Below, piece after piece: positions 1 through 3,658 of a stretch of DNA of 64,000 bases. The position numbers and the translations under genes are program-made. Each line of letters begins with the position of its first letter. Position 1 is the stretch's first letter. The notes under the pieces are model-generated. The model saw only the letters and a program-made list of their open reading frames with translations. It was not told where the DNA came from and searched no databases. Origin of the DNA: Paramoeba atlantica (lineage: Eukaryota > Protista > Discosea); contig CDRNVI010000026.1 in NCBI GenBank assembly GCA_977017575.1, forward strand, positions 248,001 to 312,000. Direction: 5' to 3'.

Positions 1-139
1 GCTGACCTAAGAACACTCGCAAACTGATATTATTAAGGATACATGTACTCTGACCCCCACTTAATTGTCATACCCTAACTACAATTGTCCGTTTTTTTTC
101 CTCGAAAAAGTGGTGACAAATAAGGGGGGAAAGTCACAG
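1..139. mobile_element. Right end of a TA-flanked TIR element (CTGTG-terminus family), continuing off-window
   Basis: 51-139 matches the reverse complement of 18965-19035 (TGACCCCC..CACTTAATTGTC..GAAAAAGTGGTGACAAATAAG..CACAG|TA). The same terminus occurs at 8742, 17139, 18965 and 40909. Confidence 0.5.
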
Positions 140-218
140 TACTATACGTCGTACTATACAATGATATACGTTTAATATCGTTCTCGTGTCTTTTGTGTTA
201 TCTACTCTACACTCTGTC

Positions 219-290
219 TGATGATTCTGCTTAACAAAGCATTTTATACTATGACATTCATGATAAACTTCGTCTTTCGCTCCTATCTGA
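219..290 (+). ncRNA. Box C/D snoRNA, U80/snR60-like (copy 1), predicted guide for LSU rRNA 2'-O-methyl-G in AUAGGGGCGAAAGAC
   Basis: 72 nt, starting with box C TGATGA and ending with box D CTGA, with internal ATGA/ATGATA (D'/C'). The guide GTCTTTCGCTCCTAT directly before box D forms 15 bp (one G-U) with the conserved LSU sequence AUAGGGGCGAAAGAC. The 3' end GTCTTTCGCTCCTATCTGA matches the recalled 3' end of human U80 and yeast snR60. Confidence 0.85.
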
Positions 291-502
291 TTTTTCGGTC
301 AAAGGGGCATATTTTTGTACCAAGTATTTTTTTCAATGAAATTTCTCCCCGACGAGTAGAAAAAAGTTCTTAAATATACAAAAACATTTTATCGTTCCTC
401 ATTAGTACTATCCAGAAATATTACGAATACTTGTATTGCGGGATTGCAATCACCTTTCACCTTCGCACAGTGCTGAAGTGTTTTTATACATTCTAGGAAG
501 GA

Positions 503-727
503 ATGTTCATCCCGTACCTCGATGGTATGAATTAATTCACTCAAATGTATCACACCCTTCGCAGTCAAAGCTCATATTAAATGTGATTTTAAGGGTGGTC
601 CAAACTTTCTTTGCATAACGGTTCCTTAGTAATGAAAGATTCCAATAAATTATCAGAAATTATTCAAATATTATAAAAATCGTTTTCAGTCAGTCGGAAG
701 AGTTGGTACAAAAATTTCCTTTTCACT
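503..727. repeat. Duplicated ~225 bp block (copy 1) next to the snoRNA
   Basis: Aligns with 1723-1796 plus 2850-3020, i.e. copy 2 split by the retro-insertion. Confidence 0.75.
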
Positions 728-1796
728 CAATTATCACACCAGTGGCAGAGAACTCGGGGAGGGGGGGGGTCGATGAATGGTGATCAAACGTGCAGTCCGT
801 GCAATGAACGATTGTTTTTTTGAAAAGGAGTGGAAAATGCGATTTTATCGCTCACTTACCTTGATTCTCAGGAAACCACCTTGTGGAGCGTCGAGATGTA
901 CAGAAACAGTACCTTTATCTGTAAAAGGAATAATTCCCTGTATGCATGTTTTTTCAGCGCAAAAACGGTTTTTTTTTGCAATTAATAGGGGGAGGGAGAA
1001 GTCTGGAACGCGGCATTGCCTCTATTTTTTTACCCAGTATTTGAACCATGGTCCATATTTGAAAACAAGCTACTACGTAAGGTATATAGAAACTATAAAA
1101 CCAACTTTGCCACTTCCCAACTTTCCCACCTCCCCTTACCCAACTTCCACCTTTCCAGAGAGGGTAAGGCTCGGAAGGAAGACGTCCTCCGGTCGGTTCA
1201 AGGCGCCCCCTGGACCCCTATTCCCAAGGCTTTTTTCACGTCTCCATGCTTACACGTGTATGTCCAGTGGGAAAGTGCGGTTCTCCTTGGGACATGTGAT
1301 TTCTTCCCCGTAGACCGGAACTCCCATATTGCATCATACAGGTAAGCCTGCAGAGATTTATATGGTGAAAACGCGCACAATACGCGTTTTTGTCACCTGT
1401 TTCTATTCAGCAGCACTGAGAATGTTCTCCTGCATCTAATTTTTGTCGTTGCGGTGTTGATACACTATGAAGCTCCCACTCAGAGCCTGCACGGTCATAT
1501 TGCGCCGGCACTCAGCCACCAGCTCATCATCACCCATAAATAGAGAGTTGAGAGTTCGCCCAGCACTACTTATTTTCCCTCTCGCTCCGACTTCGAAAAC
1601 GAGTAGGAAAGTGCGGGACAAGAACGGAATTCCGTTGGGTTGAAGGCGTGACCGGTACCTCTGGACGAACGCCTAGCTACTAGCCTCTTTCCGGTTCTAG
1701 GACAGCCAGCGTGCGCGTGTCCATGTTCATCTCATACGTCGATGGTGGGGTTTAATTCACTCAAATGTATCATACCCTTCGCAGTCAAAGCTCATA

Positions 1797-2177
1797 GGAA
1801 GCTAGTCCTAGTGGACGTGAAGATGGTAAACCCACTGGCCCCGTCCTACGTGGACAAGGAGGCAGCTGAGCCCTCCTTCACCGTGAGGCAGGCTGAGCAC
1901 CTCAAAAGGCGCACTCACGAGGAAATGGCGGGGGCCAGGGAGATGGATTTCTTCCCTTTGGCCTTCACCACGTACGGTGTCCCCGGCCCCGAGACCCTCC
2001 AGTTTCTAAATCTGGTCGCTCGGAAGGCCACCGGCGAGAAGAATGGTTGCCTCAGGCATTTTATCATGGCAATCGGGGTAGCCATCCAAAAGGGGAACGC
2101 CCAGATAGCGCATGCCGCGGTACAAAACTGGTACCGTAGGGGCGTGCGCAAATGGGCTCGGGGGTTGACAAAAAAAA
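1797..2177 (+). mobile_element. 5'-truncated CRE/SLACS-clade non-LTR retrotransposon 3' end (restriction-like endonuclease C-terminus)
   Basis: Translation KLVLVDVKMVNPLAPSY...AEHLKRRTH...FFPLAFTTYGVPGPETLQFL...AIGVAIQKGNAQI fits the D..V..P.A.SY / AE..K / F.P.AFET.G / ALQRGNA pattern of REL-type CRE-like elements. It ends in an A8 tract. Confidence 0.7.
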
Positions 2178-2213
2178 CTTTAACGATAAAGATACTGTTT
2201 CTGTACCTTATTG
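2176..2213 (+). other. Spliced-leader (mini-exon) sequence, retrocopied
   Basis: AACTTTAACGATAAAGATACTGTTTCTGTACCTTATTG. The last 23 nt are 20/23 identical to the recalled T. cruzi SL end GATACAGTTTCTGTACTATATTG, and the 5' AACT..AACG is also conserved. It is followed by a UTR rather than the GT of an SL RNA intron. Confidence 0.8.
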
Positions 2214-2252
2214 ATTTATTTCCTTTTTCTTCCCTACACCATCTTCCAGACC

Positions 2253-2699
2253 ATGGGAGGGCACCCCCCTCAAATACACACTTTCTTGTCGGCATCCCCC
2301 CTCCCTCTCTCGTCCCATCATCCGTCTGCGCCGTATCCCCCCACCTCGACCTTCCGTGTCAGCGCGCTTGTCGTTCTGTTGTTTTCCTCTCTTGCGTCCC
2401 CCACCCCCGTGCCAGCAGCCCAAAGTATTGTATACTTGCTCAAGGGGTGGGGGCAGAGGTCCAGACCGATGGGCTCGGGCGTCGTTTCTCCTTGTCCCCG
2501 CGTCCGTCCCGCCATGTCCCTCTTCCCGCTTTTTGCCCTCGGCGTGACGGCGGCTATGCGTTTCGTCTCCTCCAAGTCTCCCACCCTCGTACAGCAACTC
2601 AAAGTATCTTATACTGCTAACGGGGTGGGAGCGGAGGTCCTGGACCACATGGGCCACATGTGCGGACGAGCCGGTCAGTGGGGACGCGTCAGTCGGTAG
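2253..2699 (+). pseudogene. Processed retrocopy of a trans-spliced mRNA, 148-aa ORF of unknown function
   Basis: Order: SL, 39-nt pyrimidine-rich 5'UTR, ATG at 2253, TAG at 2697-2699, purine-rich 3'UTR, then an A-tract at 2845. Confidence 0.6.
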
Positions 2700-2849
2700 G
2701 GCGTAAGTGGGGGAAGGGAAGTGAGTGTGGTGAGGGGAAGGAAGTAGGGGAAGGAAGGAAGTAGGGTGAAAGGTTTTAAGTGGTGGAAAGTTCGAAACGT
2801 AGATATAAACATTAGAATCAATACTACTGCCCCTAATTATTCGCAAAAA

Positions 2850-3020
2850 AAAGCTCATACTGTTACACGAAATGTGATTCGAAAGGTGTTGCTAACTTTC
2901 TTTGCATAACGGTTCCTTCGTAATGAAAGATTCTAATACATTATTAGAATTTATTCCAATATTATAAAAATCGTTTTCATTCAGTCGGATGAGTTGGTAC
3001 AAAATATTCCATTTTCACAG
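2850..3020. repeat. Duplicated block copy 2, right part (left part 1723-1796)
   Basis: Matches ~570-727, e.g. AACTTTCTTTGCATAACGGTTCCTT(A/C)GTAATGAAAGATTC. Confidence 0.75.
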
Positions 3021-3159
3021 ATTTTTCTTTACATTTGCCGTGTTTGATATTTAAAGTTTTTATTCAGTTATTTTCAAATGGACTACAGTTATTTTACGAT
3101 TGTTGTGTATCTACTCTATGAGTTTGTACACTCAATACGACGCCGTACTACATACTATC

Positions 3160-3230
3160 TGATGATTCTGCCTAACAAAGCATTTTTATTATGAAACTCA
3201 TGATACATTTTGTCTTTCGCTCCTATCTGA
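3160..3230 (+). ncRNA. Box C/D snoRNA, U80/snR60-like (copy 2)
   Basis: TGATGA...GTCTTTCGCTCCTAT-CTGA, 71 nt. Confidence 0.85.
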
Positions 3231-3360
3231 TTTTTTAACCATTGTTCTCATATCGATTTACACTTGTCTTTACTTACATTGTACTATTCATTGGAGACTA
3301 TTCCTCTTTGTTGCGGTTTTTATGTTATCTATTATTAGACTTTTTAGACTCAATACTGCC

Positions 3361-3433
3361 TGATGATTCTGCCTGATAAAGCATTTTGTTTATTATGAAC
3401 CTCATGATACGTTCGTCTTTCGCTCCTATCTGA
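3361..3433 (+). ncRNA. Box C/D snoRNA, U80/snR60-like (copy 3)
   Basis: TGATGA...GTCTTTCGCTCCTAT-CTGA, 73 nt. Confidence 0.85.
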
Positions 3434-3658
3434 TCACCCGCGTACATTTTCGTTCCCTATTTTACCAGTAACACTAGTAACCCCACTAATTGGGGTTTCG
3501 TTTTCACTAGATTTTTATCAACCTTATTCAGATTATCAACCTTAATTCAGGCAGAATTAATGAAAGTGTAATTAAAAGAGGGAAAAGATCAAGCGCTTAA
3601 ATTCTATTCTAAAACAAGACGTTGCCATTTTGGTAAAAAAGCAGTATTCTATGTGTCT

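Follow-up and report, generated by a model that had tools for sequence, protein, structure and literature searches.

Reverse transcriptases (RTs) of the R2 type and of the L1 element switch templates, and the R2 enzyme performs end-to-end template jumping in vitro. L1 makes chimeric retrocopies flanked by target-site duplications (TSDs), and the mammalian U6-L1 and mRNA-L1 chimeras are explained by template switching of the RT during target-primed reverse transcription (TPRT). Here, we describe a composite insertion of 1,063 bp (counted with one TSD copy) at positions 1797-2859 of a 64,000-nucleotide stretch of the Paramoeba atlantica assembly GCA_977017575.1. This stretch, hereafter the window, corresponds to C26:248001-312000 in a genome of 45.7 Mb and 248 contigs, for which contigs and loci carry our own C and L handles. 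The insertion joins the 5'-truncated tail of a non-long terminal repeat (non-LTR) retrotransposon, family A, to a full-length retroposon, family B, which begins with the spliced leader (SL) of the organism. There is about an even chance that this two-unit insert is the product of a single TPRT event with a template switch. As in the chimeric retrocopies mediated by L1, two unrelated RNAs stand in the same orientation with a 3' poly(A) and one TSD around the whole. Unlike in those chimeras, the upstream partner ends in an A-run of its own, the downstream unit is an SL-headed retroposon, and the host is of a kinetoplastid type.

The CRE, SLACS and CZAR elements of trypanosomatids have several features in common with family A, namely an RT followed by a CCHC motif and a restriction-like endonuclease (RLE), a short A-rich 3' end, a kinetoplastid host and a 2A-like NPGP peptide in the open reading frame (ORF). 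These elements have a fixed insertion point within the exon of the SL RNA gene, whereas family A copies lie at diverse sites. R2 proteins (9dou, 9nl3, 8gh6, 8ibw-z) give the best profile and fold matches for the RT and endonuclease of family A; unlike R2, family A is not rDNA-specific, and identity in the endonuclease domain is ~16%. To our knowledge, the mobile elements of kinetoplastids either target SL genes (CRE, SLACS and CZAR) or bear the Pr77 5' signature. Keyword searches of the literature returned no retroposon family with SL-initial DNA copies and a single precedent, in dinoflagellates, whose retrogenes carry relict spliced leaders, the retroposed RNAs having a DNA copy of the SL as their 5' end (PMC5585692). 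In dinoflagellates host genes are recycled, whereas here the SL heads mobile-element families, one of which has dozens to hundreds of copies. The present locus provides a clean case, with an empty site, in which reverse transcription of an SL-capped RNA reached the 5' end and the product was integrated outside the SL genes. The analysis adds verified empty sites, rejection of a host-mRNA origin and an explicit comparison of nested insertion with template switching.

A composite insertion in a dispersed repeat

The insertion interrupts a copy of repeat F, a dispersed repeat of ~310 bp (Table 1). A first-pass annotation, made from the letters of the window, had described a TSD, a retroelement tail, A8, a 38-mer, a 148-codon ORF, an A-tract and a second TSD, and direct reading of positions 1-3600 finds all of these elements at the same coordinates. 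The 10-bp duplication AAAGCTCATA is present twice (1787-1796 and 2850-2859), with an effective length of 7-10 bp, as its first three A's can be assigned to the duplication or to the tail alike. At the right end, a run of eight A's (the A-tract, 2845-2852) is followed by GCTCATA, which resolves into an A5 tail and the second TSD copy. Once 1797-2859 is removed, colinearity with empty repeat F is regained base for base. The empty target that the annotation had placed near 560-575 is confirmed as a single target in an uninterrupted copy, and six more repeat F copies on other contigs are likewise uninterrupted at the target point. A single TSD surrounds both units, which have the same orientation, as in template-switch chimeras, and no repeats flank either unit by itself. 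The insertion is a real feature with clean borders.

Table 1. Coordinates of the composite insertion and its target repeat in the window
Feature	Position	Strand	Basis
Left half of target repeat F, ending in TSD copy 1 AAAGCTCATA	1723..1796	+	Aligned with the in-window copy and six elsewhere
5'-truncated 3' end of non-LTR retrotransposon family A	1797..2169	+	At least 40 copies of 1797-2177 in the genome, 72-96% identity
A8, the usual short tail of family A; last two A's possibly SL positions 1-2	2170..2177	+	Family tails and direct reading
DNA copy of the 38-nt spliced leader	2176..2213	+	Matches SL RNA gene exon save two substitutions
Body of SL-headed retroposon family B	2214..2844	+	Close copies 96-98% with different flanks; 77-90% subfamilies
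Short A-tail of B (A5), then TSD copy 2 AAAGCTCATA (2850-2859)	2845..2859	+	Direct reading; same junction in partial copy on another contig
Right half of interrupted repeat F	2860..3010	+	Alignment with empty copies
Uninterrupted paralogous repeat F copy	403-780 (503..720)	+	Target once, at 567-576

Read evidence consists of assembled contigs from the runs of one study and from one RNA-like run. A 413-base public-run contig (1643-2055) bridges the left junction with zero differences, and none of the read contigs shown bridges the internal junction between A8 and SL or the right junction. One run (X3) contains a joint 1787->2851, which may represent an empty allele or a paralogous repeat copy, the two being indistinguishable. 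The right junction is reproduced elsewhere in the assembly. A 423-bp copy (97.9%) of window 2546-2966 lies on the minus strand of L030 (C66:339869-343173, locus positions 1383-1805) and retains the 3' part of B with its tail, the duplication and a further 107 bp of flanking sequence. It has two private changes in common with the window copy, which indicates that this locus was subsequently either copied or transcribed and retroposed; the C66 piece looks like a 3'-transduced or duplicated part of the window locus.

The upstream unit is an R2-like retrotransposon tail

Positions 1797-2177 are the tail of a non-LTR retrotransposon with an R2-like RT, a CCHC motif and an RLE. The unit measures 381 bp with its A8 and has an open frame throughout 1797-2169. 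It comprises the last ~118 endonuclease codons, beginning just before the catalytic (second) D, and a 3' untranslated region of ~20 nt. The family A stop codon is mutated at 2150 (TAA to AAA), giving rise to a spurious 292-codon ORF at 1742-2620. In eleven other family A copies, mutual similarity extends upstream of the point that matches 1797 and start points differ, so the window copy is a genuine 5' truncation. Copy lengths include 381, 464, 539, 671, 754, 985, 1293, 1411+ and ~3,500 bp. Nine of the eleven other copies terminate in GAC followed by 8-9 A's, and a clear, non-A-rich duplication of 9 bp is present in one copy.

Several lines of evidence support the assignment to an R2-like element. 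Firstly, a longer copy (L042) encodes YLDD, then C-x-C-x9-C-x-H-x3-C, then RGPD...VDVT; its RVT_1 match is below the cutoff (E=5e-4, 20.2 bits vs a cutoff of 29.6). Secondly, the best PDB matches of a family A profile are R2 proteins (E=5e-19), with the CCHC and PD...DVTV segments aligned to the R2 endonuclease, and residues C15, C17, H29, C33, P76-D77, D90 and K120 are invariant or nearly so in 20 sequences. Finally, the AlphaFold model of the last 201 residues has a predicted local distance difference test (pLDDT) score of 90, and all seven of its structure matches at E 2e-6 to 3e-4 are R2 (template modelling score 0.54-0.66), with generic PD-(D/E)xK nucleases alone ranking below them. Since Pfam assigns no family to the 125-aa tail, the endonuclease assignment is drawn from the longer copies, the profile and the fold. 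A single-sequence PDB search with the 465-aa family A ORF gave no match, and the close homologues in searches of 5.8 and 1.8 billion proteins and in cluster look-ups are all unnamed metagenome or assembly proteins.

These results bear out the 5'-truncated REL-endonuclease tail of the first-pass annotation, and they do not extend to its CRE/SLACS-type label. The 3' flanks of the eleven copies comprise seven different sequences (four copies share one, two another), none of which contains SL RNA gene sequence, so the SL-gene target that defines the CRE/SLACS type is missing. Of the contigs with SL genes (C97, C107, C11, C74, C3 and others), only C74 has a listed family A match, ~100 kb from its SL genes. 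Family A is not SL-gene-specific in this genome.

The longer copies show further features of the family. The ORF contains a 2A-like GCIEANPGP motif. In L042 (C30:347100-356600, minus strand), the copy is interrupted by ~2.4 kb carrying a 518-codon ORF with a match to DDE_1 (pogo-type transposase), while the 3.5-kb copy in L053 (C2:361100-369500, minus strand) has one in-frame stop and an internal deletion that removes the RT core. The 5' ends of L053 and L042 start with GTTGAATCC, that is, the last four leader bases. Four other family A tails (L004, L005, L006 and L009, on C59 and C26) run through A8 and C into the same sequence, GGAACGCGCGAATGG..., a further tail-to-head composite of which several copies have been made.

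The downstream unit is an SL-headed retroposon

Unit 2 (2176-2852) has an SL 5' end, a 3' poly(A) and a TSD, the hallmarks of a processed retrocopy, and had been taken in the first-pass annotation for a complete copy of a host mRNA. That interpretation is rejected here on the basis of a high-copy SL-headed family, an SL-less parent that was not found, and a ratio of nonsynonymous to synonymous differences per site (pN/pS) like that of control frames. A genome search for family B gave 577 candidate places, of which 40 were scored, at 73-100% identity, many of them with independent flanks. The close copies are on C44, C84, C18, C4, C94 and C3, and their flanks are unrelated. Poly(A) tails and duplications accompany the copies, as is typical of retroposons that resemble short interspersed elements (SINEs). 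Every full-length copy examined begins with the SL, often short of its first 2-6 bases or with ATC for AAC, and copies end in a C-run, usually then AATTATTYGC, and then A8-A40. The corresponding motif in the window is a C-run followed by AATTATTCGC. Family B has dozens to hundreds of copies in several subfamilies. A parental gene with a splice acceptor in place of the SL, as expected of a host mRNA, was sought by a genome-wide pattern search, and no site in the genome has AG immediately ahead of the first 15 post-SL bases.

The ORF of 148 codons (2253-2699) has a counterpart of ~150 codons that is open in three subfamilies. Its pN/pS of 0.67-0.77 is no lower than that of two control frames (0.67-1.26), and a second frame is open over most of the element. 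Pfam finds no family in the 148-aa ORF or in the antisense ORF, and the only homologues are five unnamed proteins from one source archive, which look like copies of the same family. Family B is probably non-coding and is best described as a non-autonomous, SL-headed, SINE-like retroposon rather than a host gene. The locus is not evidence of host-gene recycling, and its stakes are lower than those of the original proposal.

Family B shares its 3' motif with at least two other retroposon tails (H and E). Family A does not have this motif, which makes it an unlikely partner of B. Family A probably did not mobilise unit 2, and the RT probably came from a partner of the families that share the 3' motif of B. 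The proposal that an SL-associated element had mobilised a host mRNA thus finds no footing on the side of the element either, as family A is not associated with SL genes and its 3' end is unlike the motif of B. The group sharing this motif has another member within the window, at 960-1030 on the minus strand, where the 3' end of a further retroposon (C-run, TATTAATTGC, A9) is found. At L029, a candidate TSD was rejected, the flanks themselves being repeats.

The 38-mer is the spliced leader of the organism

The SL-like 38-mer of the first-pass annotation is indeed the spliced leader. A genome search finds the SL exon followed by GTATGAGAAG (intron) at 40 exon-intron junctions in tandem arrays on C97, C107, C11, C74 and C3, and these tandem-array 38-mers are the SL RNA genes of the organism. 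The unit on C3 is 1,454 bp long and also contains a 5S rRNA gene. The window leader differs from the gene exon by two substitutions (CAG to CTG and GTTG to ATTG), and its first two A's (2176-2177) are shared with the A8 run. On its 3' side it is followed by non-intron sequence, as expected of a trans-spliced RNA. The leader core, searched with tags from the 3' half of the SL, occurs ~830 times in dispersed positions, and a contig from the RNA-like public run links the leader to yet another sequence. The canonical trypanosome SL end, with one mismatch tolerated, gave just two sites, both non-gene, and a looser pattern found the true SL genes; a literature search with the SL sequence returned no paper.

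Additional observations concern the SL genes and the leader copies. The arrays at C97:341-28612, C107:1853-22437 and C74:104185-121533 have a period of ~2.56 kb, and spacing on C74 reaches 7.3 kb, which suggests insertions inside that array. The first three bases of dispersed leaders are often ATC instead of AAC (L016, L021, L023, L026, L028, L029, L032, L062, L063, L065 and L076), and some leader heads consist of G and ACTTT (L061, L075) or are short of 2-6 bases. Such altered 5' bases may be footprints of modified cap-4 nucleotides in reverse transcription. At the 5' ends of three B copies from two subfamilies (L018, L024 and L027), a 12-nt partial leader, AACTTTAACGAT, stands right before the full leader. 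The partial leader breaks at what we take to be the position where CRE/SLACS cut the SL genes of trypanosomatids. A third family begins with a 5'-truncated leader followed by GTACATTTT(G/C)C... (L035-L039, L045:8640-8720 and ~170 further sites), and it accounts for most of the 207 places at which GT, though not the SL intron, comes after the leader.

One insertion event or two

The reading we favour combines TPRT with a template switch. The RT would have been primed at the nick GTC/AAAGCTCATA on the short poly(A) of a family B RNA and would have copied this RNA to its capped spliced-leader 5' end. It would then have moved onto the 3' end (A8) of a family A retrotransposon RNA, where copying stopped after 381 nt, and the cDNA would have been joined to the upstream side of the break. 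The outcome would be one 7-10-bp duplication around both units, which would have entered together. B RNAs would bear the SL because they were trans-spliced, or otherwise SL-capped, before copying. The broader proposal, that one RT ran to an SL-capped end and jumped between RNAs as one case of a genome-wide habit of forming retro-trains from SL-capped RNAs, is put at slightly less than an even chance.

Several observations support a single event. Firstly, the family A unit, with its usual A8 retained, is shorter than the other 11 copies measured, and the two units show no significant difference in divergence from consensus. Secondly, junctions between a tail and a leader are frequent in this genome. 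Among ~19 independent B tails, seven run into another SL head and every junction is different. Measured against a chance baseline of ~830 SL tags over 14,728 runs of at least 10 A's, tails followed directly by the leader are at least seven times commoner than random A-run targeting predicts. In an unbiased set of 19 leader tags, seven stand directly after an A-run, which in at least four cases is the tail of another retroposon; 11 of the remaining 12 have no A-run and belong to other families, and one is an inverted leader pair. Moreover, 5'-complete B copies are often flush with an upstream tail, whereas the 5'-truncated copies in L022 and L030 are not. Finally, L025 (C63:418186-421937, ~1395-2290) contains four head-to-tail units of 55, 23 (B 3' end), ~650 (full SL-B) and 8 nt, each ending in A12-15 and all inside one duplication of A11 and TTGACT. 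This locus is the clearest hint of serial template switching and is hard to obtain by four separate insertions, and such trains elsewhere in the genome tilt the balance towards switching. Should the single-event reading be correct, the window locus records in vivo template switching by a protist RT and would help explain the head-to-tail retroelement trains of this genome.

Other evidence weighs against a single event. The internal junction carries A8, where an all-A duplication from a second insertion would be invisible, and the read contigs shown do not confirm this junction. The five B insertions with a readable duplication are all at A-runs of at least 10, and the target of the composite has no more than AAA. 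The constancy of A8 among family A tails suggests that the enzyme of this family initiates precisely at a DNA nick. An SL head follows only 1 of at least 40 family A tails, approximately the chance expectation, and the A unit is nominally more diverged from its consensus than the B unit is from its subfamily consensus (2.9%, 11/381, vs 1.65%, 11/665; Fisher p=0.19).

These points feed the strongest alternative, two successive insertions, which we consider a serious contender at somewhat below an even chance. A 381-bp family A copy would have entered repeat F and created the 7-10-bp duplication, and a full-length B would later have entered its A8; duplication of the whole A8 run (A8 on the left, A8 on the right) would hide the second duplication. 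The readable B duplications lie at runs of 10-25 A's (L014, L016, L022, L025 and L028), and the A-runs on either side of B are both eight long here, compared with 10/9 and 20/19 in two other flush B copies. By itself, family A often yields 5'-truncated, A8-ended copies, and the non-A-rich 9-bp duplication noted above belongs to one such insertion; the chance-level match among its tails and the slightly greater divergence of the A unit fit the same order of events. Against nesting, an intermediate allele with A only was not seen, and every confirmed B target is longer than the 8-A run. In clear B cases the second nick lies 2-6 nt past the A-run, so that GCT.. would be expected before the leader, where it is absent. 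The genome-wide excess of tail-to-head junctions, together with the micro-train in L025, also indicates that many such junctions are not chance nesting. A known parallel is an Alu or other SINE nested in the poly(A) of an older long interspersed element, likewise an A-run-seeking retroposon behind another tail with an invisible all-A duplication; it differs in that the tail here has only eight A's and the junction excess across the genome is above chance. As a result of the A-run at the internal junction, one event and nesting give the same sequence. Of the TPRT and template-jump model in the first-pass annotation, the single TSD around the composite stands in its favour and the junction itself fits nesting too, and sequence cannot decide between mechanisms that remain at roughly even odds.

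An improbable alternative is that the composite had existed as DNA elsewhere and that its read-through RNA was retroposed here as a unit, truncated in the A part. L024 and L027 share an upstream tail, the 12-nt partial SL and SL-B with different right flanks, which indicates that composites do propagate, and the C66 copy of window 2546-2966 also points in this direction; the A8-to-SL junction, however, is found only here in the assembly. An assembly chimera or cDNA contamination at the internal junction is very unlikely, for although 2170-2180 is not spanned by any read contig shown, one contig crosses the left junction without differences, the right junction recurs in a paralogous copy, the TSD and empty sites are exactly as in a real insertion, and the SL copy has two substitutions, as old DNA would have.

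Genomic context of the window

The window segment 297-3019 is a patchwork of repeats. A paralogous region on C59, 91.5% identical, lacks the entire segment and so is uninformative on the order of events. An Rfam scan of the whole window gave no match. The long intron-less ORFs of the window are all on the plus strand and include those for CDC48, an M16 peptidase and an MIF4G protein, an arrangement that, in combination with the spliced leader, points to a kinetoplastid-type protist.

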